From the sequence record LC727698.1: 64,000 bases of DNA; one strand, given 5' to 3'. Position 1 is the stretch's first letter. Every line of letters begins with the position of its first letter. A program made the translations under genes and the position numbers. A model generated the notes under the pieces. It did no database searches, was not told the DNA's origin, and saw nothing but the letters and a program-made list of their open reading frames with translations. This document shows positions 1,947 to 23,705 of this stretch, piece by piece.

Positions 1947-2222
1947 ATGACTGACATTAATCCAAATTCTCGCCACTACTCTGCTGAAGACGTCCGGCGA
2001 ATTAAACAGTTAGTTTCTGAAGGCATGCAAGTCATGCAAGAAATTGAAGATTTAAAAACCGGACTAGCAGAAACAGTTAAAGCAATTGCAGAAGAAGTAA
2101 ATGTTAAGCCTTCCCAGCTTAATAAAGTTATTAAAATCGCACATAAACGTTCTTTAAACGAAGAACTAGATAAGATTAACGAAGTAGAAGAGATTCTAGA
2201 CGCAATTAAAGAAGGTCGTTAA
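1947..2222 (+). CDS. Small helical dsDNA-binding protein (T4 DsbA-like)
   Basis: ATG at 1947 after GGAG. Size, helical pattern and acidic C-terminus resemble T4 DsbA; lies directly upstream of polB. Confidence 0.5.
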   Translation: MTDINPNSRHYSAEDVRRIKQLVSEGMQVMQEIEDLKTGLAETVKAIAEEVNVKPSQLNKVIKIAHKRSLNEELDKINEVEEILDAIKEGR

Positions 2223-2233
2223 TATTTTCAAAA

Positions 2234-2264
2234 CAAGCCGTGCTTTTGCGCGGCTTTTTATTTT
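2234..2264 (+). terminator. Rho-independent terminator
   Basis: AAGCCG...CGGCTT stem followed by a T-run. Confidence 0.55.
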
Positions 2265-2275
2265 GTAGGACAATT

Positions 2276-4687
2276 ATGTACATCGATATTTTCGAAGATA
2301 AGAAAAATGAAATACTTCTAGTTGCAGAACGATCTGCAGGCAAACGAATATACAAACAATACCCTATAGATCATACATATTACATATTAGATGCAACCGG
2401 ACCGTATAAAGATATATTCGGTAATAATGCTAAAGCTATTAAGCCATCTAGCATAAATGAAAAAATGACTCAAATGAAAATGCTAGATTTTTCGCAAACG
2501 TGCGAAATAGACGTCAGGCCAGAATTTAGATGCCTGGAAGTAAACTATAAGAATGCACCTATGCCAGATTTGCATGTTGCATTCTTCGATATCGAGACCG
2601 CGTTTGATCAAAAACGCGGTTATGCCGACCCAGCTGATCCTTTTAATCCCATTATATCAATATCTGTATATTTGCAATGGATGCAGCAAATGGTTTGCTT
2701 AGCATTAGCACCAGAGACTATATTGCCAGAAGATGCACAACGCATAGCATCAGAAGTAGGCGAAACAATTATATGTAAAAATGAAAAAGAAATGCTAAGT
2801 ATGTTTATTGACTTAGTAGAAGATGCAGACATTTTATCAGGTTGGAACTCAGAACGTTTCGATATTCCTTATACTTTTAACAGAATTGTAAAATTATTAG
2901 GTAAGAATGAACTAAGAAAATTATGCCTTTGGAATCTTATGCCCAAGAAGCGCAATATTGAACAAGAAGGCGGCAGTAGTTTTGTTACATTCGAAACATT
3001 TGGTAGAATACATTTAGATTATCTCCAATTGTATAAAAAATATAATTACGAAGAACGTCATAGTTACTCGTTAGATTCTATTTCGGAAATCGAACTAGGT
3101 GAACGAAAAGTTCCATACAACGGAACGTTAGACAAACTTTATAAATATGATTTTAAAAAGTTTTTAGAATATAACATTCAAGATACTCGACTCCTAGATA
3201 AGTTAGATAGAAAATTAAAATATATAGATCTAGCTTCCACTATTGCACATAGTAATTGCATTCCTATCCCTACTGTTATGGGTGCAGTAGCTACAACCGA
3301 ACAAGCAATTATAATCGAAGCACATAATAACGGCATGGTAGTGCCATCTAGGCAACGTTTTAAAAACAATGATACACTTAAAGCTGCGGGCGGTTGGGTA
3401 GCATATCCTAAAGTAGGACTGCATAGAGATATTGGCTCCAGTGACTTAAATTCTCTGTATCCTTCTGTGTTAAGGGCACTAAACATGAGCCCAGAAACTA
3501 TTATCGGACAAGTTCGATTAACGCTTACTAACCCTGCAATCGAAGAATGGTGTGCAAAAGGCGGAACAAAACATACATTTGCTGCATGGTGGAACGATAG
3601 GTTTACCACTTTAGAAATGGAATATGTGTTAAACAAAGACAGGGGTACTATATTAACGTTAGATATGGCAGACGGGCGCTCGTTTGAACTGTCAGGTGCC
3701 GAAATATACGAATTAGTATTCAACAGTGGTCAGAATTGGCATATCAGTGCTAACGGAACTATATTCACACAAGACAGAGCAGGTGTAATTCCGTTACTAC
3801 TTACAAGATGGTATGCAGAACGTAAAGGGATGCAGAAAATTGCATCAGATTATAATTCTTTAGATAAAGAACACCATAGCGACAAAACTGTATTTTTAGA
3901 AGATAAATCAGTATTAGATGGAATATGCGTAGGCGAAGTTGAATTAGCAGACCATTATAATATTAATGATGTATATGTTGCAGCTACATTAAAAAATCTT
4001 GTCGAATCAAAAAATTGGCAAGAAGTAGCAATATATATGAAAAAGTATGGACTAGAAGTGTCGTCTGACAATTCAATTGTTATGTCAGATTCCCATATGC
4101 AAAACGAATATTACGAATATTGGGATAAAGCCCAGTTAGTTCGTAAAATTGGATTAAACAGCTTATATGGCGGACTACTTAACGAACATTCTAGATTCTA
4201 CGATAAAAGACTAGGACAGAGTACTACACTTACTGGGCGCTGTATCACTAGACATATGGCTTCTAAAACAAACGAAATGTTTACTGGCATTTACGATCAT
4301 GAAGGCGATTGTGTAATTTATGGCGATACAGATAGTGTAGATGGATCAACTATCCTAAATACTTCTCTAGGTAAAATAACTATAGAAGAATTGTTTAATG
4401 TGTCTGACAAGCATGTAGTTCATGCAGAAAAAGAATTTGCTTCGAATGAAGATGTTATGGTAATGTCGTGGGACAATTCTGCAAAACAACCATATATGGG
4501 GCATATAAACTATGTGTACCGCCACGAAGTAGAAAAAGAGCTATTCGAAATAGAAGACAACAACGGAAATAAAGTTATAGTAACCGAAGATCATTCTATT
4601 ATGGTTATACGTAACGCAGAACTTCTAGAGGTTAAACCCACAGATTTAACAGATAGTGATATAATATTATCTATTGTATATGAATAA
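2276..4687 (+). CDS. Family B DNA polymerase, N-terminal part, fused to the N-half of a split intein
   Basis: ATG at 2276 after AGGA. Exonuclease motifs FDIET, GWNSERFD, YNIQD; polymerase motifs DLNSLYPS, KIGLNSLYG, YGDTD; intein N-terminus follows. Confidence 0.95.
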   Translation: MYIDIFEDKKNEILLVAERSAGKRIYKQYPIDHTYYILDATGPYKDIFGNNAKAIKPSSINEKMTQMKMLDFSQTCEIDVRPEFRCLEVNYKNAPMPDLHVAFFDIETAFDQKRGYADPADPFNPIISISVYLQWMQQMVCLALAPETILPEDAQRIASEVGETIICKNEKEMLSMFIDLVEDADILSGWNSERFDIPYTFNRIVKLLGKNELRKLCLWNLMPKKRNIEQEGGSSFVTFETFGRIHLDYLQLYKKYNYEERHSYSLDSISEIELGERKVPYNGTLDKLYKYDFKKFLEYNIQDTRLLDKLDRKLKYIDLASTIAHSNCIPIPTVMGAVATTEQAIIIEAHNNGMVVPSRQRFKNNDTLKAAGGWVAYPKVGLHRDIGSSDLNSLYPSVLRALNMSPETIIGQVRLTLTNPAIEEWCAKGGTKHTFAAWWNDRFTTLEMEYVLNKDRGTILTLDMADGRSFELSGAEIYELVFNSGQNWHISANGTIFTQDRAGVIPLLLTRWYAERKGMQKIASDYNSLDKEHHSDKTVFLEDKSVLDGICVGEVELADHYNINDVYVAATLKNLVESKNWQEVAIYMKKYGLEVSSDNSIVMSDSHMQNEYYEYWDKAQLVRKIGLNSLYGGLLNEHSRFYDKRLGQSTTLTGRCITRHMASKTNEMFTGIYDHEGDCVIYGDTDSVDGSTILNTSLGKITIEELFNVSDKHVVHAEKEFASNEDVMVMSWDNSAKQPYMGHINYVYRHEVEKELFEIEDNNGNKVIVTEDHSIMVIRNAELLEVKPTDLTDSDIILSIVYE
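4334..4684 (+). mobile_element. Split intein N-fragment (117 aa, Ser1, no Cys)
   Basis: Begins SVDGSTIL right after YGDTD; block B-like VTEDHS; ends at a stop codon. Confidence 0.9.
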
Positions 4688-6362
4688 AGAATATTATCAG
4701 TCATACGCAAAAGAATTAAAAAAGAATAATAAGAAAGAATACAATCGTATTCTTTCTTTGTATGAGCCTGTATTCGATAAATGGGTTGCATTTAAGTATT
4801 ATATAAAAGGAATATCGCCGCCTGTATGTAAAGAATGTGGTAATAGAATAACTGTTTCGGCAAAACAAGCAGAATATCACACAGAATGCAAATATAATAA
4901 ACACAAGTATTCATTTGATAAATTTATAAAATGCATAGATGATGACCAATACATATATTGTGTGTGGAATGGATATATTTCAACATCTGACAATATAACA
5001 TACAGATGCACTAAACACGGCATAATTGTTCAAAAACTTAGTTCTAGACTAAAAGGTCACAAATGCCAAAAATGTTCAGCTGAGCGTAAAGTAAGTCTAG
5101 ATAACTTTAATAACTGGAAAACGCAGTGTTCTAAAATACATAATAATTTTTATGATTATTCTGTATCTACTGATTTTACATTCTTAACAAAAGATGTATC
5201 TATTAAATGTCCAATACATGGAATATTTAAACAAAAAGCAAACGTCCATCAATCAGGTCACGGTTGTAAACAATGCTCGTTCGAAGCCATCGGTCATAGA
5301 TTATCATATGACACAGATTCTTTTATAGAAAGAAGTAACAATGTTCATAATAATTTTTATGACTATACCAAAACTATATACACTAACATTAGAGATAAAG
5401 TTATTATAACATGTCCGATACACGGCGACTTTAATCAGATAGCATATTATCATACTGCCGGACACGGTTGTCAGAAATGCGATTTAGATAAAGTAGCAGA
5501 AACTACCTATAGATCTAAGGCAGAAATAGAAATATTTGATTTAGTTAAATCTTATTGCTCAGATACAATTCATTCATACAATAAATTCGGGTTCGAATTA
5601 GACATATATGTTCCTAGTAAAAATCTTGCAATAGAATATAATGGACTTTATTGGCATTCTTCTAAACATATAGAAACTGATCAAAAGTATAAAACATACC
5701 ATCTTGATAAAACCACTACATGCGAACAAAATAATATCCAATTATTACACATTTTTGACAACGAATGGCATACTAAAAAAGATATATGGATCTCGGTAAT
5801 AAAAAATAAACTAGGTTTATCTAATAAAATATATGCAAGAAAAACAGAAATTAAAGAAGTTAATTTCGATGATGCAAAACAATTTGCCGAAACGAATCAT
5901 TTGCAAGGTCATGCACAATTTCGGCATGCATACGGATTGTATTATTCGGATCAATTAGTTTCTTTATTAACAATTGCAAAGCCCAGGTTTAATAAAAATG
6001 CAAACTGGGAAATAGTAAGATTTTGTAACCTAAATAACACAAGTGTAATAGGTGGGTTTTCTAAATTATTAAAGGTAGTTTCTTGTAATTTTACAGGCAA
6101 GATAGTATCATATGCAAATAGGCGCTGGTCTGCTGGAAACGTTTATGAAAAAAACGGATTTGCTAAAACTTCAGTAATAGCTCCTGGATTTTATTATACT
6201 GACTTCAAAGATACATATAATAGATTATCTTTCTCTAAAGACAAGGCAAAAGTTAAATTAAAAAATTATAATAATTCAGTTAGTGTAGTAGAAAATATTT
6301 ACGCAAACGGATATGGCAGGATTTGGGATTCAGGAAATATTGTTTATACAAAGGATTTATAA
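4680..6362 (+). CDS. Free-standing homing endonuclease, Vsr-like/EDxHD PD-(D/E)xK family, with zinc-binding repeats
   Basis: ATG at 4680 overlaps the polB-N stop. Repeated CPIHGxFxQ...H..GHGCxxC motifs; SKAEIEI...ELDIYVP..LAIEYNGLYWHS nuclease core; sits between the two intein halves. Confidence 0.85.
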   Translation: MNKEYYQSYAKELKKNNKKEYNRILSLYEPVFDKWVAFKYYIKGISPPVCKECGNRITVSAKQAEYHTECKYNKHKYSFDKFIKCIDDDQYIYCVWNGYISTSDNITYRCTKHGIIVQKLSSRLKGHKCQKCSAERKVSLDNFNNWKTQCSKIHNNFYDYSVSTDFTFLTKDVSIKCPIHGIFKQKANVHQSGHGCKQCSFEAIGHRLSYDTDSFIERSNNVHNNFYDYTKTIYTNIRDKVIITCPIHGDFNQIAYYHTAGHGCQKCDLDKVAETTYRSKAEIEIFDLVKSYCSDTIHSYNKFGFELDIYVPSKNLAIEYNGLYWHSSKHIETDQKYKTYHLDKTTTCEQNNIQLLHIFDNEWHTKKDIWISVIKNKLGLSNKIYARKTEIKEVNFDDAKQFAETNHLQGHAQFRHAYGLYYSDQLVSLLTIAKPRFNKNANWEIVRFCNLNNTSVIGGFSKLLKVVSCNFTGKIVSYANRRWSAGNVYEKNGFAKTSVIAPGFYYTDFKDTYNRLSFSKDKAKVKLKNYNNSVSVVENIYANGYGRIWDSGNIVYTKDL

Positions 6363-6617
6363 ATGCATAATCTAACAAAACACCTTTTAGGTGTATTTTC
6401 TGCAAAAACAGAAGACGAAGAATATAACAGTGCAAAAAGAGCGTTAGAAGAATTAAACAAAAATATAAAAGAAAGAGATCCTAATAAATTTAATGTGTCT
6501 TTAGGAAAGGTATCTAAAGTAACTAATTTAGGAAAAAAGAAACAATATGTATACGATATAGGGATGAAAAATCCCGATAATCCGTATTTCTTTGGAAATA
6601 ATATATTAGTTCACAAT
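6363..6617 (+). mobile_element. Split intein C-fragment (85 aa, ends His-Asn, +1 residue Ser)
   Basis: Blocks F/G YVYDI...ILVHN; TCT (Ser) at 6618. Confidence 0.9.
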
Positions 6618-7502
6618 TCTTGCTATTTTACTGCATGGCCTGCAGTAAAAGACCTAGTAGAATCTGGCGAAATGGAATGGGATAAAGATACTGTCATTAA
6701 ATTATACGACAATGTTTCGTCACAAGTAAGTGATACATTTCCAGAATTTTTAAAACAAACATTTAATGTTCCATATAAAAACTCAGAAGGTGTTATTAAG
6801 TCAGGTAGGGAAATTGTAGCTACTTCTGGTCTTTTTATCAAAAAGAAACGTTATGCTGCTATGATGTATGATAAAGAAGGTACTAGATACGACGACGAAA
6901 ACAGCCCAGGAAAAGTAAAAGCAATGGGTTTAGACTTACGTCGGTCAGATACGCCTAAATTTGTCCAAACATTCCTTATGGAAATTCTAGTTATGGTGCT
7001 AACACATAAAACAGAAGATGAAGTAATAGAATATATTCGAGAATTTAAAAAAGAATTTAATAAAATGAAACCGTGGGAAAAGGGAATGCCAAAAGGCGTC
7101 AACGGTATCAGTACATATGAAGATAAATTAGAAGAACATATGAATAAAAAGTTAGCAGGAAGAGAGTCTAGAATCACTGTCCCCGGTCACGTGTCTGCTG
7201 CGATGAACTGGAATAAACTAAAGCTTATCAATAAAGACCTACATACTCCTAAAATCTCAGATGGTCAAAAATGTGTTGTTTGTTATTTAAAAGAAACCGC
7301 AGACAATCATTTTACTAGTATAGCATATCCTGTAGATGAATTGCACTTACCAGAATGGTTTACGTCTTTGCCATTCGATGAAGATTTAATGAGAGAAAAA
7401 GTAGTAGATAACAAAGTTAAGAACCTTTTAGGTATTCTAAAATGGGATTTTAGTAAAACAGAAGAAGCTGCTGCACACTTCGATTCGCTGTTTGGTTGGT
7501 AA
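6363..7502 (+). CDS. Split intein C-fragment fused to the C-terminal part of family B DNA polymerase
   Basis: VYDIGM...FFGNNILVHN/SCYF splice junction, then PolB motifs KKRYA and KVKAMGLDLRRSD. Confidence 0.93.
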   Translation: MHNLTKHLLGVFSAKTEDEEYNSAKRALEELNKNIKERDPNKFNVSLGKVSKVTNLGKKKQYVYDIGMKNPDNPYFFGNNILVHNSCYFTAWPAVKDLVESGEMEWDKDTVIKLYDNVSSQVSDTFPEFLKQTFNVPYKNSEGVIKSGREIVATSGLFIKKKRYAAMMYDKEGTRYDDENSPGKVKAMGLDLRRSDTPKFVQTFLMEILVMVLTHKTEDEVIEYIREFKKEFNKMKPWEKGMPKGVNGISTYEDKLEEHMNKKLAGRESRITVPGHVSAAMNWNKLKLINKDLHTPKISDGQKCVVCYLKETADNHFTSIAYPVDELHLPEWFTSLPFDEDLMREKVVDNKVKNLLGILKWDFSKTEEAAAHFDSLFGW

Positions 7503-7524
7503 TCAAAAACTATACTTTGTACAC

Positions 7525-7553
7525 TTGCATTATGAAAATATTTAATGTATAAT
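7525..7553 (+). promoter_or_regulatory. Sigma70-like promoter
   Basis: TTGCAT-N17-TATAAT. Confidence 0.7.
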
Positions 7554-7582
7554 TCACACACATCTTAGGAGAATAATAAGTA

Positions 7583-8329
7583 ATGATTGTAGACAATTTA
7601 AAGGACGTAGTTCGTAACACTCACGGTTTAGGTTTTATAGATACTGTCAAAATTATCGGTTCTGTAAATGAAACTAAATTAGAAGCTATGTCAACTAATA
7701 AAACTGTAGTTATGTACGGTTCTTTAAAAAAATCCATTCCGGGGTTAGACGATACTGTAGGTTTAAGTAGAATGTCTGTACTGAGCGGTATGTTAAATTT
7801 CCCACCATATTCGGGAGATGATGCTGAAGTTTCTATTAAGAAACAAGAACGTAACGGTGAAGAAATCCCTGCAGAAATTGTATTTTCTTCTTCGACGGGT
7901 CACAAATCGTCGTACCGGTTTATGGCACGAGATACAGTAGATGAAGTGCTAAAAGTTCCGCCGTTTAGGGGAGTTGTGTGGGATATAGTTATTCAACCTA
8001 CTAAGCAAGCGATGAAAGATCTTCAATATTTTAGTGCTGTATTGGGTTCTTATGAATCTAACTTTTTAGTTAAAGTAACAGACGGTGTTTTAGAATTCCA
8101 CATAGGTACTGGTGCTACTAGTGACCGTACCGTTGTACCATTTGCAAAAGATGTCAAGAGCACATTACGCAATAACTGGTCCTGGCCATTACCGGAAGTG
8201 TTAGCAATTCTAAAAAACGCAGATAGTGGCAAATGTACTATGTCTATTTCTAGTCAGGGTGCATTGATGATTGAACTCGACACTGGGCTAATAGAAGTTC
8301 AATATATTCTTCCTGCAAAAAGTGCATAA
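7583..8329 (+). CDS. Probable DNA polymerase sliding clamp (T4 gp45-like)
   Basis: 248 aa, adjacent to polB; YRF motif and C-terminal YILP resemble phage clamps. Confidence 0.6.
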   Translation: MIVDNLKDVVRNTHGLGFIDTVKIIGSVNETKLEAMSTNKTVVMYGSLKKSIPGLDDTVGLSRMSVLSGMLNFPPYSGDDAEVSIKKQERNGEEIPAEIVFSSSTGHKSSYRFMARDTVDEVLKVPPFRGVVWDIVIQPTKQAMKDLQYFSAVLGSYESNFLVKVTDGVLEFHIGTGATSDRTVVPFAKDVKSTLRNNWSWPLPEVLAILKNADSGKCTMSISSQGALMIELDTGLIEVQYILPAKSA

Positions 8330-8665: not shown

Positions 8666-10288
8666 ATGAAAAATTTATCAAACAGTCAAAAAGATTATGC
8701 GATCTATTTGCCTGCAATTAGTGGGTTTTACACAAAACAATTAGACAGTTCCATTAACGATCCGTCTACAAGAAAAATACCTAGCTTTCCTAATGGATAT
8801 AATACTCTTAATTTTTTAGATCCATCTAGCGATACATTCTTTTACGGGTATGGGTTATATTCTGCAGGCCATGCAGAACTGTCTTTATCTAGAACTGATG
8901 CAAAAGAATGGATGATCCAAGCCAGGGACAAAACACAAACAACAGTTATTGCAGATTCGGGTGGTTTCCAGGTAGCTACCGGTGTAATTAAATTAAACTG
9001 GGATGATTTTAAAGGAGCTAGCGGAGATAAAATAAGAAATGAAATTTTAAAATGGTGTGAACATACCGCTGACTGGTCAATGACACTAGATGTTCCTGCG
9101 TTTGCTGCTACTCCTCCGTACAGCTCAAAAACCGGTCTTAATAAATTTGAAGATACATTAGATTATTCTCTTCATAATTTACATTATTACATGAAGAACA
9201 GAACTCCAGGCGCAACTAAATTCCTTAGTGTATTATCGGGATCGGACGTAGATACATCTAAGATTTGGTACGACAACGTAAAAGCATTTAGTGACCCCGC
9301 TAAAGTAGTAGAAATGGGATATCCAGCTAGTCATACACTCGAAGGATATGCATTTGCTGGTATAAACATGAGAAATATGTATTGTGCTCTTTCTCGATTC
9401 TTAGATCTAATAGATGATAATATTATTTCAGATAAAAACTGGATACACTTTCTCGGACTAGGCAGGACCGATTGGGCTTGTTTCTTAACATCTATTCAAC
9501 GAAATATAAGAAAACATTATAATCCCAATATTAACATAAGTTTTGACGCAGCTTCTCCGTTTGTTTCTGTGGCATACGGTCTTGCATATAACTATAATTA
9601 TTTTAATCCCAAACGGTGGGGATATAATATGGATTCTGCCCCAGACAGTAGAGAGTTTAGTGATAAAGATATTCCTATGCCGTTTATGAGTCCTATTATG
9701 GAAAAATTATCATTAAAAGACATATGTCCATATCACAATGGTTATGGTATAATAAATGGTGTTAAAAATGCAAACTTTACAAAAGAAGATGTAGAAACTG
9801 CTCTTAAAGAAGGAAAAGATGCAGAATACGTGCCGCCTAGCGCAAATAAAAATGGTAAAGTAGGTAAAACCAGTTGGGATTCACTTAGTTACTTATTAAT
9901 AATGAATCATAATGTTTACAATCATATAGCTGCAATCCAAGAATCTAATAGATTAGTCGATATAGAACGGTTGCGAGTTAAAGTAGATTACCGAGATTGG
10001 ACTAGAGATAAAAAGAAAGGTACTATAGAAGTAAGTAATCACGTCCCTAGTTCGATTTTATATTTTGACCATTTCGTAGAAGTATTGCTAGATCCGAGTA
10101 CTCCTAATAAGCGACAATTACTAGAAGATTATAGACCTATGCTAGACAGCATTAGTTTCGGTAATTATAACTCAAACTCATTTAATAGTCTTTTTGATGT
10201 AGATGCTACTGCAATTGAAGATGAAAATAAGTTTGCAGACATAAACGACGAAAAACTAACTGAATTAGAACAAGGATTAGACAATTAA
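8666..10288 (+). CDS. tRNA-guanine transglycosylase (TGT)/DpdA-like base-exchange enzyme
   Basis: IADSGGFQV, MTLDVP, GYAFAG, IHFLGLG, SFDAASPF and HNVY correspond in order to TGT catalytic motifs; no obvious CxCxxC zinc site. Confidence 0.8.
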   Translation: MKNLSNSQKDYAIYLPAISGFYTKQLDSSINDPSTRKIPSFPNGYNTLNFLDPSSDTFFYGYGLYSAGHAELSLSRTDAKEWMIQARDKTQTTVIADSGGFQVATGVIKLNWDDFKGASGDKIRNEILKWCEHTADWSMTLDVPAFAATPPYSSKTGLNKFEDTLDYSLHNLHYYMKNRTPGATKFLSVLSGSDVDTSKIWYDNVKAFSDPAKVVEMGYPASHTLEGYAFAGINMRNMYCALSRFLDLIDDNIISDKNWIHFLGLGRTDWACFLTSIQRNIRKHYNPNINISFDAASPFVSVAYGLAYNYNYFNPKRWGYNMDSAPDSREFSDKDIPMPFMSPIMEKLSLKDICPYHNGYGIINGVKNANFTKEDVETALKEGKDAEYVPPSANKNGKVGKTSWDSLSYLLIMNHNVYNHIAAIQESNRLVDIERLRVKVDYRDWTRDKKKGTIEVSNHVPSSILYFDHFVEVLLDPSTPNKRQLLEDYRPMLDSISFGNYNSNSFNSLFDVDATAIEDENKFADINDEKLTELEQGLDN

Positions 10289-21859: not shown

Positions 21860-22209
21860 TCGTCAGCGAGATTATATATTCTATTTTCATAGCTGCATTA
21901 ATAACAGTTATGACTATACTATATATAAGTCTCAGAATAATAACATGTAAGATATTAAATAAGTCACTAAAGATTTCAGCTAATGTAATTATATATGGTA
22001 CCTCTAATATAGAATATGTATATATTCCTGAAATAAAATATAAATTTCTTTCTTTTAAAATAACACATTCTGGTTTAGTTATGTTTGACAAAGAGTTTGG
22101 ATTTAGAACACTAAACGATGCCATAAATGCATTAAATATGTATGTAGACGCCGATATTATAAAAATAGTATATAAAAAGGTACCCACATTTTATACTTGG
22201 CACGAATAA
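21856..22209 (+). CDS. Hypothetical membrane protein
   Basis: N-terminal TM segment; ATGA overlap. Confidence 0.55.
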   Translation: MIVSEIIYSIFIAALITVMTILYISLRIITCKILNKSLKISANVIIYGTSNIEYVYIPEIKYKFLSFKITHSGLVMFDKEFGFRTLNDAINALNMYVDADIIKIVYKKVPTFYTWHE

Positions 22210-23705
22210 TGGATAACTTTGATATAGAATTAAAAGAACTCATAAAAAATACAAATCCTAACGCATTAGGAAATGTAGTAAAAAGTAAAAAAGAAATATA
22301 TGAGGAATTAGTTCGTCGAACTAATTCCTTTCTTCGTGACGACGTTTCTGTGACAGAAAGGATTCATATATACTTAAATCCGGCTGATAATGTTTACTGT
22401 AAGTATGATAACAAACGGACACTAAAGCGAAATAAAGATACAAAACAAACCCAATACGGATTTTGCGGAAATAAAAGTAAATGTAAATGCCATATGGAAT
22501 GGTCTTTAAAAAATCATCCAGGCATGACACAATCCGGAAAAGAAAGTATGAAAACAAAAAGGATAAAAACTTGGATAGAAAAATACGGTGTCGATAATCC
22601 ATCTAAGTCAAAAGATATTATTGCAAAACAGCAATTAAGTAAAAAACATATAAAGCCAGATCATAGAACTATAAAGGAATTGGGATATAAAAAAGTAGTA
22701 GAACGACTTTCTAACATACTCACCCCTACGTTTAGTATAGACGAGTACGAAGGGTGCTTTAGAAAAAATGTGTATGACTGGATATGCAATGCATGCGGAA
22801 ATATAGTAATCGGACACGTAGATTATGGGTCTACTCCGAGGTGCAATGTTTGTAATCCTTTAACAAAGTCTGCCGGCGAAAATGAAATATCTAACTATAT
22901 AGTATCGCTAGGTTTTGATGTGATTAACAATGACCGATCTATATTATCTAACAAAGAATTAGATATAGTAATTAAAGGTACAAACATAGCAATAGAATAT
23001 AATGGTTGTTATTGGCATTCTACAAAACACAGAAAAAAATCATATCATGTAGATAAATTTATAGAATGCAGAGATAAAGGAATAAAGTTAATACAAATTT
23101 TAGATGTAGATTGGATATCAAAACAAGACATAATAAAATCAAGGTTAAAATCTATTTTAGGTTGTAGTGATAGAATATATGCAAGGAATACAACCATAAA
23201 AGAAATAACATTTAACGAATCTTTAACTTTTTTAGAAGAAACTCACATCCAAGGTTCTTGTCAATCATCTGTAAGACTAGGTCTATACGACAATGAGAAT
23301 TTGTTAGTAGCCGTAATGACATTTGGGAAATCTAGATATACAAAAGAGGAATATGAATTACTTAGATATGCTAGCAAAAATACTGTTGTAGGAGGAGCCA
23401 GCAAACTTCTTAAATATTTCATAAAAACATATTCCCCTAAATCTATTATTACATATGCAGACAGGTGTTGGTCAGATGGAAATTTATATAAACAGCTCGG
23501 GTTTACAAATGTAACCAAGAATGACAGAAATACAGGTTATTGGTATATAAAAGACAACATAAAATATCATAGATCTAATTTCATAAAATCTAAGATTTCT
23601 AATAAAAATAATTTACATCTAAGCGAATCAGAAATAATGGATAGTTTAGGTTATTTAAAATATTACGATTGCGGCAATTACAAATATACATTGCAGGTAC
23701 GCTAG
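22209..23705 (+). CDS. Second free-standing Vsr-like/EDxHD homing endonuclease
   Basis: SAGENEI...ELDIVI..IAIEYNGCYWHS core; C-terminal half clearly homologous to 4680..6362; TAATG coupling. Confidence 0.82.
   Translation: MDNFDIELKELIKNTNPNALGNVVKSKKEIYEELVRRTNSFLRDDVSVTERIHIYLNPADNVYCKYDNKRTLKRNKDTKQTQYGFCGNKSKCKCHMEWSLKNHPGMTQSGKESMKTKRIKTWIEKYGVDNPSKSKDIIAKQQLSKKHIKPDHRTIKELGYKKVVERLSNILTPTFSIDEYEGCFRKNVYDWICNACGNIVIGHVDYGSTPRCNVCNPLTKSAGENEISNYIVSLGFDVINNDRSILSNKELDIVIKGTNIAIEYNGCYWHSTKHRKKSYHVDKFIECRDKGIKLIQILDVDWISKQDIIKSRLKSILGCSDRIYARNTTIKEITFNESLTFLEETHIQGSCQSSVRLGLYDNENLLVAVMTFGKSRYTKEEYELLRYASKNTVVGGASKLLKYFIKTYSPKSIITYADRCWSDGNLYKQLGFTNVTKNDRNTGYWYIKDNIKYHRSNFIKSKISNKNNLHLSESEIMDSLGYLKYYDCGNYKYTLQVR

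Follow-up and report, generated by a model that had tools for sequence, protein, structure and literature searches.

Organisation of the polB locus

The window analysed here, the whole 64,000-nucleotide stretch of sequence record LC727698.1, matches with 100% identity the Pseudomonas phage 30-3 (Wroclawvirus), a Pseudomonas jumbo phage of the PA5oct group. It carries polB-N (2276-4687, plus strand), which a check of the ORF coordinates places between the ATG at 2276 and the stop codon at 4685-4687, a free-standing endonuclease gene, and polB-C (6363-7502, plus strand), which starts with the C-intein. The features of the locus are the following:

2276..4333, plus strand: polB N-extein, 686 amino acids ending in YGDTD, with the exonuclease domain and, as far as motif C, the polymerase domain
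4334..4684, plus strand: N-intein, 117 amino acids, with Ser1, block B TEDH and the NX Arg-His, no Cys, net charge -14 (Pfam, PDB 9hth, alignment)
4680..6362, plus strand: free-standing predicted "Hef-like" endonuclease gene, 560 amino acids (PHROG 559 and 3339)
4731..4758, plus strand: perfect 12-bp hairpin in endonuclease codons 18-27 (folding of the 131-nt context)
4827..5489, plus strand: predicted zinc-finger repeats, endonuclease residues ~50-270 (Pfam DUF723, Cys/His columns, model)
5508..5819, plus strand: predicted Vsr / I-Bth0305I-type (EDxHD-like) nuclease core, endonuclease residues 277-380 (profile and structure matches)
5832..6359, plus strand: predicted GNAT-fold domain, endonuclease residues 385-560, closest to phage Mu Mom (Foldseek, VIA-align)
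6363..6497, plus strand: N-terminal extension of the C-intein, amino acids 1-45, absent from canonical IntC fragments of ~40 amino acids
6498..6617, plus strand: C-intein core, amino acids 46-85, with block F VYDIGM...FF and block G ILVHN, no Cys, net charge +4 (Pfam, Aes123 alignment)
6618..7502, plus strand: polB C-extein, 294 amino acids plus stop, palm and thumb, starting with Ser+1-Cys-Tyr-Phe (PHROG 262, RB69 gp43)

The first-pass annotation had described a polymerase broken at YGDTD|S, with a 117-residue N-intein starting with Ser, an 85-residue C-intein ending in His-Asn before Ser-Cys-Tyr-Phe and no cysteine in either half, and all of this agrees with the coordinates. The YGDTD motif corresponds to residues 682-686 of polB-N and its final Asp ends at nt 4333; the N-intein Ser is encoded at 4334-4336, the C-intein spans nt 6363-6617 and SCYF begins at nt 6618. 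The polB-N and endonuclease ORFs overlap by 8 nt, in ATGAATAA, and the TAA stop of the endonuclease gene adjoins the ATG of polB-C at 6363, 8 nt upstream of which lies AAAGGA. Since the three ORFs are co-oriented and touching, they are probably carried on one transcript with coupled translation.

The two extein halves together make up a family-B polymerase. The N-extein matched Pfam DNA_pol_B_exo1 and DNA_pol_B, and the halves are contiguous on PHROG 262 (positions 10-583 for the N half and 581-852 for the C half). The last 68 residues of the N-extein align to residues 555-623 of RB69 gp43, ending in YGDTD (D623), and the C-extein aligns to residues 698-849 of the same protein; the halves meet exactly at polymerase motif C. 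The locus is colinear in six sister phages, with no indel and with purifying selection on both the exteins and the intein. Among these six phages, variable sites were 56 synonymous and 10 non-synonymous in the N-extein, 22 and 0 in the C-extein, 17 and 4 in the N-intein, and none was found in the C-intein core. The C-extein protein is 100% identical in 11 genomes, and the annotations of PA5oct, MIJ3, Deifobo, Cassandra and 30-2 (5 genomes) contain the same three gene models.

Intein motifs at the break

Both intein halves were aligned to intein HMMs, as the first-pass annotation had suggested, and both matched Pfam Intein_splicing (PF14890). The N half scored above the 35.8-bit cut-off (37.5 bits, E 2.6e-9), whereas the C half fell below this gathering threshold (22.2 bits, E 1.3e-4), its match spanning profile positions 100-155, complementary to those of the N half. 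The N-intein also matched the nearest solved structure, that of the Aes123 PolB1 intein (PDB 9hth, E 8e-12), and aligned to Aes123, CP21, PTm1 and SCTP-2 with 32-37% identity; the C-intein core is 41% identical to Aes123 IntC.

By its sequence, the intein has the complete set of class-1 catalytic motifs. The nucleophile at position 1 is a Ser, in a block A (SVDGSTIL) that aligns with SVVGDTII of Aes123, and the T-x-x-H of block B (N3) is present in VTEDHSIMV, to be compared with VTADHSVMV in Aes123 and VTEDHSIMV in CP21. The NX motif (Lys/Arg then His), whose conservation is restricted to Ser1 inteins (Pasch et al. 2023), was found in INYVYRHEV, which the 9hth alignment pairs with INYIMKHTV of Aes123. 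Block F, the His-Asn of block G and Ser+1 follow one another in VYDIGMKNPDNPYFFGNNILVHN|S, and no variation was seen among 20 relatives at V63, Y64, D65, I66, H84, N85 and S86. The split has the expected position, with a stop after block N4 (4685-4687, after LLEVKPTDLTDSDIILSIVYE) and a new start before block F (the ORF at 6363), and in the alignment it maps to the N4-F loop of the contiguous SCTP-2 mini-intein.

Regarding the size of the fragments, the 117 residues of IntN fit the typical ~100-120, whereas IntC, made of the ~40-residue core and the ~45-residue extension, reaches 85 instead of the typical ~35-46. This is a deviation in size and no catalytic feature is missing. The extension is kept as an open frame in nine divergent relatives, its sequence is unconserved, and two low-confidence helices are predicted in it. 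In a relative which has the same architecture, the endonuclease and the N-terminal region of the C half are 43% and ~40% identical to those of the window, respectively. It should be noted that the 45-residue extension brings the C-fragment to ~2x the usual length, an observation counted against the trans-splicing model.

Both intein fragments are devoid of cysteine (0/117 and 0/85 residues) in all six genomes compared. The exteins contain 13 Cys in 980 residues and, by our own arithmetic, a Cys-free stretch of 202 residues would be expected ~7% of the time at this frequency, so that a Cys-free intein is by itself unremarkable; relatives of the same clade have 0-3 non-catalytic Cys. What carries meaning is the Ser found at both position 1 and position +1, rather than the total lack of Cys. 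Residue +2 of the extein is a Cys.

The endonuclease gene between the intein halves

The gene located between the intein halves belongs to a family with more than 5000 homologues, detected in 846 phage records, at five places per PA5oct-group genome and, in Campylobacter phages, in as many as 12 copies per genome. The ORF is intact in the six genomes, among which 47 synonymous and 26 non-synonymous sites vary, and its AF2 model has a pLDDT of 91. Three modules are predicted. In the first, a treble-clef zinc finger (C..H..C..C) is repeated three to four times, with invariant Cys/His columns and strand-strand-helix units repeated in the model, and this is presumed to be the DNA-binding module; in this region Pfam detects DUF723 in the window's protein and DUF4379, DUF723 and CapR in homologues.

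The second module is a nuclease core, for which a Vsr-like identity, a type mentioned in the first-pass annotation for known fractured phage genes, is supported here. The family profile matched I-Bth0305I (PDB 3r3p, E 2.7e-5), the domain model superimposed on 3hrl_A (Z 12.3, rmsd 2.1, VIA-align), BLASTP aligned the core with the Aes123 VSR endonuclease (E 0.003), and among homologues the Pfam families Vsr, MTES_1575 and DUF559 were matched with E values of 5.5e-6 to 9e-3, in every case under the curated cut-off. D308, E319 and H326 are invariant in the family, in line with a Vsr-type fold and catalytic residues. The core is homologous to those of the I-Bth0305I / EDxHD enzymes and phage Hef (Taylor et al. 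2011; Sandegren et al. 2005), and Hef-type homing enzymes have been placed in the I-Bth0305I family (Taylor et al. 2011). By contrast with the classic I-Bth0305I / EDxHD type, in which the N-terminal module is NUMOD/HTH, zinc-finger repeats occupy this position in the window's protein, a GNAT domain is added at the C-terminus, and the "NGD" Asp of the classic members inspected is replaced by Leu in the family (consensus EYNGLYWHS).

The third module is predicted to adopt a GNAT fold closest to Mom. Its best Foldseek match was Mom (8bv8, E 1.2e-5); with VIA-align, Z scores of 12-14.5 were obtained with GNATs, 12.7 with Mom, whose alignment (145 residues) was the longest among the GNAT matches listed. 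Three homologues scored 25.1-26.5 bits with Pfam "Mom" (PF25680), just under the 27.1-bit cut-off, whereas the sequence profile of the family did not reach 8bv8 when searched against PDB. The "HNH" label given to the MIJ3 endonuclease (PMC6892783), as well as to PHROG 559, was considered and rejected: it is unsupported by the window's protein, no HNH Pfam family was found in this protein or six homologues, and no HNH enzyme was among the top structural matches listed for the model.

We propose that this protein is a selfish Vsr-type enzyme of a multi-copy Hef-like family, with predicted zinc-finger repeats and a Mom-like GNAT domain. What the first-pass annotation called a homing endonuclease is therefore to be corrected to a protein of three modules and 560 residues, from a family with five copies in this genome. 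A different reading would make of it not (or not only) a homing enzyme but a Mom-type DNA modifier joined to a restriction nuclease, with a role in conflicts between phage and host or between phages, and residing by chance in the intein. It finds support in the fold of the C-terminal 175 residues and the near-threshold "Mom" matches in homologues, in the five "momylating enzymes" fused to REase domains counted in PA5oct, for which a modification-plus-restriction role was predicted (Iyer et al. 2021, PMC7824862), and in an ORF that stays intact and moderately constrained in six phages though no empty, element-free target allele is known within the genus. Nevertheless, location in the endonuclease slot of a replication-gene intein is a hallmark of homing elements, the family is free-standing and multi-copy, its nuclease profile matches a proven homing enzyme in whose family the Hef type is included, and other endonucleases, or none, are found at the same split site in relatives. 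We hold this reading to be somewhat unlikely; the homing and Mom-type roles are mutually compatible. A rather speculative combination of the two would be a selfish nuclease whose own active Mom-type domain serves it (for example by marking and protecting its own genome while rivals are cut), with the 45-residue tail of the C-intein tuning splicing. If so, the fractured polB would be a regulated node of phage-phage conflict and no passive scar.

The 131-nt context of the hairpin at 4731..4758 folds more stably than its shuffled versions (z -3.8; 0/200 shuffles fold as well), and the hairpin is possibly a translational control element. Dassa et al. (PMC2677866) described hairpins upstream of the endonuclease start, whereas that of the window lies inside the ORF, with no untranslated gap.

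Evidence for the proposed protein trans-splicing

An Rfam search of positions 2000-8000 (E<=1) returned no intron or other RNA family. No joined polB RNA was found in contigs from four RNA-seq libraries of a PA5oct-like phage, which are colinear across both borders; these are assembled contigs, from which rare variants are dropped and in which carried-over DNA is possible. A full-length polymerase arising at the RNA level, which according to the first-pass annotation would speak against splicing of the protein, finds no support in either analysis. With no intron model matched and no joined contig, protein trans-splicing is the best explanation of the locus. It is further favoured by experimentally active relatives at the same site, as the insertion site is shared with Aes123, CP21, PTm1 and VPALA, and both Aes123 PolB1 (PMC11923092) and CP21 PolB1 (PMC12707363) trans-splice in vitro. 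The opposite net charges of the N-fragment and the C-intein core were also counted in its favour, whereas the poor in vitro activity of some naturally split inteins (~30% for Aes123, ~40% for CP21) was counted against it.

We infer that the locus is highly likely to be a fractured family-B DNA polymerase gene, the halves of which would be joined by split-intein protein trans-splicing. An ancestral intein would have resided within motif C of the polymerase, where YGDTD meets S, and insertion of a free-standing endonuclease gene at the usual endonuclease position of this intein would have split it into two genes. The acidic N-fragment and the basic core of the C-fragment would associate to form a class-1 Hint domain, and splicing would proceed via two oxyesters (at Ser1, then at Ser+1) and cyclisation of Asn85. 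Release of the intein would restore the canonical YGDTD-SCYF motif C in a 980-residue polymerase. The anatomy of the locus, its homologies, the pattern of selection and the lack of an RNA-level joint are results of the analysis; association of the fragments, the chemistry of splicing and the dependence of replication on it are inferred from the active relatives at this site, Aes123 PolB1 and CP21 PolB1. The only recognisable replicative polymerase of the region would, by the same reasoning, need post-translational stitching.

Three other explanations were weighed. The polymerase pieces could form a non-covalent two-subunit enzyme, the intein halves being only a dimerisation clamp that does not splice. 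T4-type phages such as 44RR reportedly run their split gp43 as a two-subunit complex without splicing (Petrov et al. 2010). Functional fractured genes without intein are cited by Dassa et al. (PMC2677866). Here, however, the break lies inside catalytic motif C and separates the metal-binding YGDTD from the Ser, which would leave a 202-residue Hint domain in the active site. Moreover, residues needed only for splicing are all kept (Ser1, the Thr and His of TEDH, the NX His, His84, Asn85 and Ser+1), those of the C side being invariant in 20 relatives and those of the N side kept in the aligned relatives, which would be unexplained if binding alone mattered. We regard a two-subunit enzyme as very unlikely. 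Joining of the message by an intron, RNA trans-splicing or ribosomal bypass, with the intein-like motifs being irrelevant, has precedents in the group I introns with free-standing endonuclease genes that interrupt phage polB, as in Aeromonas phage 25 (Dassa et al., PMC2677866). This is scarcely credible given the Rfam and RNA-seq results and an interruption that is in frame, with intein motifs exactly at the extein borders.

It was also considered that polB might be a decaying pseudogene, another polymerase replicating the phage, since jumbo phages sometimes have more than one polymerase and SCTP-2 carries a Pol I-like gene nearby; nothing was found in favour of this. The synonymous excess in the exteins (56/10 and 22/0), the invariant C-extein protein of the 11 genomes, the lack of frameshifts or stops and the complete set of polymerase motifs make decay extremely improbable, and trans-splicing of the two gene products remains the preferred reading.

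Comparison with known split inteins

The split intein was already known. In the sister phage MIJ3, the locus of which is 98.6% identical to that of the window at the DNA level and 100% identical in the protein of both intein halves, a putative split PolB intein was described in orf153-155 (Imam et al. 2019, Front Microbiol, PMC6892783). The published blocks A, N2, B, N4, F and G are identical to ours and there is no biological difference between the two loci, so that the intein is not new, which the first-pass annotation had suggested it might be, and the value of the present work lies in characterisation rather than discovery. Ser nucleophiles, the lack of Cys, trans-splicing and the long C-fragment are not mentioned by Imam et al. 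(PMC6892783). What is added to the MIJ3 description is the domain make-up of the endonuclease, the charge polarity, the ~45-residue C-intein extension and the variation of endonucleases at the split site; the promise as a protein-ligation tool, as a candidate only, is the new part.

Aes123 PolB1 (Mootz laboratory; engineered as CL and CLm; 9hth) shares with the window's intein the host gene, the xDTD|S site, the split at the endonuclease position, Ser1, Ser+1, the NX His, the absence of Cys and an intervening endonuclease gene of the Vsr type. The two differ in sequence (32% identity in the N half, 41% in the C half), in charge polarity, which is reversed (-14/+4 in the window, +8/-11 in Aes123), in the length of IntC (85 and 39 residues) and in the endonuclease (560 residues, Hef-like, and 353 residues, classic type); in addition, the Aes123 polB is split once more, into 43A and 43B. 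CP21 PolB1, LCGC14 PolB2 and GOM-OPS-1 PolB2 are, like that of the window, PolB split inteins from phages or metagenomes with Ser1, Ser+1 and NX (PMC12707363), and CP21 PolB1 occupies the same site, its IntN being 37% identical. In each of them a single non-conserved Cys needed to be mutated (PMC12707363), whereas the window's intein has none in either fragment; these three were characterised biochemically, ours by its sequence.

The closest isolate relatives, with 37% (N) and 43% (C) identity, are the mini-intein of the Salicola phage SCTP-2 and the split intein of the Klebsiella phage KP13-7, both in jumbo-phage PolB. They are inserted two codons upstream of the window's site (YGD|S...N|TDS, Thr+1), and that of SCTP-2 is contiguous, without endonuclease, and ends in Lys-Asn. 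The term "fractured gene", already used in the first-pass annotation, is appropriate in the sense of Dassa et al. (2009, PMC2677866), whose examples are mainly phage replication genes with oppositely charged fragments, as in the window.

Efficient cysteine-less split inteins are few, those named being the Aes123-derived CL and CLm, PolB16 and LCGC14 (including in PMC12707363). The window's intein, although of an ordinary kind, can reasonably be considered as a candidate tool and, given its 32-41% identity to Aes123 and its opposite charge polarity, may be orthogonal to existing cysteine-less tools; in practice, the length of the C-fragment and the Cys at position +2 of the extein would be complications. 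As its host is P. aeruginosa PAO1, the locus offers a clean, cultivable example of the fractured gene, a state first seen mostly in metagenomes.

Organization of the fractured polB locus

The 5.2-kb stretch encompassing the interrupted polymerase gene is 100% identical to that of Pseudomonas phage sp. 30-3 and 98.2-99.1% identical to those of PA5oct, Callisto, MIJ3 and seven further records, all of them ~287-kb jumbo phages of P. aeruginosa. The three gene models of the locus are annotated, at unchanged positions, in the five records opened (PA5oct, MIJ3, Deifobo, 30-2 and Cassandra), which are classified in the Arenbergviridae, genus Wroclawvirus. The first-pass annotation had described a polB broken by a cysteine-free split intein with an endonuclease gene between the halves. 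This observation is confirmed: the coordinates, the fragment lengths, Ser1, the terminal His-Asn, the SCYF motif and the zero Cys count were each correct when rechecked.

Features of the polB locus
2276-4687: polB-N, start ATG 2276, YGDTD ending at nt 4333
4334-4684: N-intein (IntN), 117 codons, the first Ser, 0 Cys
4680-6362: endonuclease ORF, 560 aa
5832-6359: GNAT domain, residues 385-560, the C-terminal third and module 3 of the endonuclease
6363-7502: polB-C, start ATG 6363; its first 85 codons are the C-intein (IntC), ending in His-Asn, 0 Cys; extein resumes with Ser-Cys-Tyr-Phe at 6618
6363-6497: N-terminal extension of the C-intein, ~45 aa

The intervening ORF most likely starts at ATG 4680, which shares the overlap ATGAATAA with the polB-N stop, and its TAA stop directly abuts ATG 6363 of polB-C, 8 nt upstream of which lies a Shine-Dalgarno-like AAAGGA. 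A strong hairpin resembling an intrinsic terminator (2235-2256; 9-bp stem with 6 GC pairs, then a T run) precedes the polB start by 20 nt, and upstream of it is a small ORF (1923-2222) with a weak Phage_DsbA match. Just downstream of the locus, a 540-aa ORF (8666-10288, + strand) gave no Pfam match. For PA5oct as a whole, a deazaguanine DNA-modification system and hypermodified DNA are reported (PMC7824862; PMC12191111).

A split intein with serine at both nucleophile positions

The alignment to intein HMMs proposed in the first-pass annotation recovered both halves, as Pfam Intein_splicing matches the end of polB-N (profile 2-93, above cut-off) and the start of polB-C (profile 100-155, E 1.3e-4, below cut-off), the two matches jointly making one domain. 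Among solved structures, the top match of the N fragment was 9hth (Aes123 PolB1 intein, E 8e-12); the next ones were Ser1 inteins as well. The class-1 motif set is complete (Ser1, TEDH, VYDIGM, HN and Ser+1). So is the NX motif with its Arg-His, whose conservation Pasch et al. 2023 describe as confined to Ser1 inteins. V63, Y64, D65, I66, H84, N85 and S86 are invariant among 20 relatives of the C half. Relatives carry 0-3 non-catalytic Cys. With 13 Cys in 980 extein residues, the chance of finding none in the 202 intein residues is ~7% (arithmetic from 13/980); the absence of Cys is therefore not striking by itself, and the feature that counts is Ser at both nucleophile positions.

Split inteins are found at the same xDTD|S site in the Aes123 group of Aeromonas phages, Campylobacter phage CP21, Tenacibaculum phage PTm1 and Vibrio phage VPALA. 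Each has an ORF of 262-367 aa with a classic Vsr-type motif between the halves; the Aes123 and PTm1 records name it VSR endonuclease, those of CP21 and VPALA a hypothetical protein. The Aes123 and CP21 PolB1 inteins trans-splice in vitro without reductant (PMC11923092; PMC12707363). The related inteins of Salicola phage SCTP-2 (contiguous) and Klebsiella phage KP13-7 (split) lie two codons upstream of the window's site (YGD|S...N|TDS, Thr+1), and that of SCTP-2 ends in Lys-Asn instead of His-Asn. The insertion point has apparently shifted between these homologous inteins and that of the window.

Metagenomic relatives of the PA5oct-type intein have at the split site the same 560-aa endonuclease (L012), classic 322-362-aa EDxHD enzymes (L016, L018 and L019) or no endonuclease at all (L014). 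They show all stages of the gene-breaking model of Dassa et al. (PMC2677866) and suggest that endonucleases have replaced one another at a single split-intein site. In several of these relatives polB has a second break, further upstream.

Proposed protein-level reconstitution of the polymerase

Mapped to the PHROG 262 polymerase profile, the N half extends to position 583 and the C-extein takes over at 581. In the alignment to RB69 gp43, the last residue of the N-extein falls on D623 of YGDTD. Splicing would therefore recreate YGDTDSCYF, and the polymerase so rebuilt would lack no part on either reference. The predicted spliced products are YGDTDSSYF in SCTP-2 and YGDTDSVYF in KP13-7. The six Wroclawvirus genomes compared align colinearly across 8.2 kb with 0 indels, and each of them retains Ser1, HN and Ser+1, intein halves free of Cys, and an intact endonuclease gene. 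The C-extein protein is identical in 11/11 genomes. A search for a close polB allele without the intein gave none; beyond the genus, the most similar polB is 44% identical.

Variable sites among six Wroclawvirus genomes (synonymous/non-synonymous)
N-extein: 56/10
N-intein: 17/4
Endonuclease: 47/26
C-intein: 1/1
C-extein: 22/0

The rival proposition raised in the first-pass annotation, that a full-length polymerase is made at the RNA level, was looked for in an Rfam scan and in RNA-seq contigs, and neither gave a sign of it. The scan of 2000-8000 revealed no intron at E<=1, its sub-threshold matches being Leu_leader and SorY only, both spurious because they fall on the terminator-like hairpin upstream of polB. 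In four RNA-seq libraries holding PA5oct-like sequence (49 differences), the contigs were colinear across the stretch, covered both borders and contained no joined transcript; assembled contigs may hide rare forms and DNA carry-over is possible, making this absence of evidence and not proof. RNA-level joining was rejected on these two grounds, and the interpretation that an active polymerase requires protein trans-splicing is supported.

Differences from known cysteine-less tools

The window's intein is 32% (N fragment) and 41% (C fragment) identical to that of Aes123. Its net charge is -14 for IntN and +4 for the IntC core, whereas in the Aes123/PTm1/CP21/VPALA group IntN ranges from +3 to +8 and IntC from -8 to -14. 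Split inteins are known with either charge polarity (Dassa et al., PMC2677866). Its reversal here suggests that this intein may be orthogonal to CL and CLm, the engineered forms of the Aes123 intein.

The IntC core is alignable from ~residue 46, and nothing corresponding to residues 1-45 is present in the IntC of Aes123 (39 aa), CP21 (38 aa) or PTm1 (43 aa). The frame of this extension is open and of similar length in nine divergent metagenomic relatives, across which no conserved sequence was found, and absent from eleven; the KP13-7 extension is longer still. AF2 predicted two helices in the extension with low confidence and no confident structure for residues 1-90 of the C half, which is unsurprising when one fragment of a split intein is modelled by itself. 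Import of the extension by the Hef-like endonuclease was rejected, as L018 and L019, with classic ~320-365-aa endonucleases, also have it, and L016, likewise with a classic endonuclease, lacks it. Codon 45 is an in-frame GTG and falls where short-form IntC fragments begin; initiation there, giving a canonical 41-aa fragment, was judged unlikely since this GTG has no Shine-Dalgarno whereas ATG 6363 has one, and it is also disfavoured by the open upstream frame in the nine divergent relatives.

The suggestion of a new Cys-less intein holds as to composition, with 0 Cys in both fragments, but not as to the locus: Imam et al. 2019 (PMC6892783) described the putative split PolB intein of MIJ3, listed the same block sequences and noted the similarity to SCTP-2, with cysteine, serine and trans-splicing unmentioned. 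In the library searched, no paper connects PA5oct or MIJ3 with cysteine-less intein work. Inteins of this kind are familiar and this particular one is already in print; what is left is its biochemical characterisation and two small puzzles, one posed by the IntC extension and the other by the endonuclease's Mom-like domain.

The intervening endonuclease

The 560-aa protein has more than 5000 homologues. Members of its family are present in 846 phage records; each PA5oct-group genome has them at five places, and Campylobacter phages, for which the name Hef-like is used, at up to twelve. Its AF2 model is confident (pLDDT 91) and, with the searches, resolves three modules: repeated treble-clef zinc fingers, a Vsr-type nuclease (residues 277-380; structural match 3hrl, Z 12.3) and the GNAT domain. 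A single-sequence PDB search gave nothing useful, I-Bth0305I being reached by the family profile only (E 2.7e-5), and BLASTP against the Aes123 enzyme gave E 0.003. Hef-type enzymes were already assigned to the Vsr-like family by Taylor et al. 2011. The HNH label of the MIJ3 record found no support in Pfam searches of the protein and six homologues or among the top structural matches listed.

The best Foldseek match of the GNAT domain is phage Mu Mom, an adenine-modifying enzyme, and homologues match Pfam 'Mom' with scores slightly under the curated cut-off. Iyer et al. 2021 (PMC7824862) had counted five proteins in PA5oct that fuse Mom to a REase, and suggested for them a role in modification and restriction. 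The domain may be catalytic or may act in DNA binding only.

A perfect 12-bp hairpin at 4731-4758, inside endonuclease codons 18-27 (fold z -3.8 in its 131-nt context), may damp translation of the endonuclease; hairpins upstream of such genes were described by Dassa et al. (PMC2677866). A second Hef-like paralogue (22197-23705, + strand, 502-aa ORF), among the five copies per genome, is 37.5% identical across the nuclease and GNAT part and differs in its N-terminal module, with a sub-threshold DUF7487 match.
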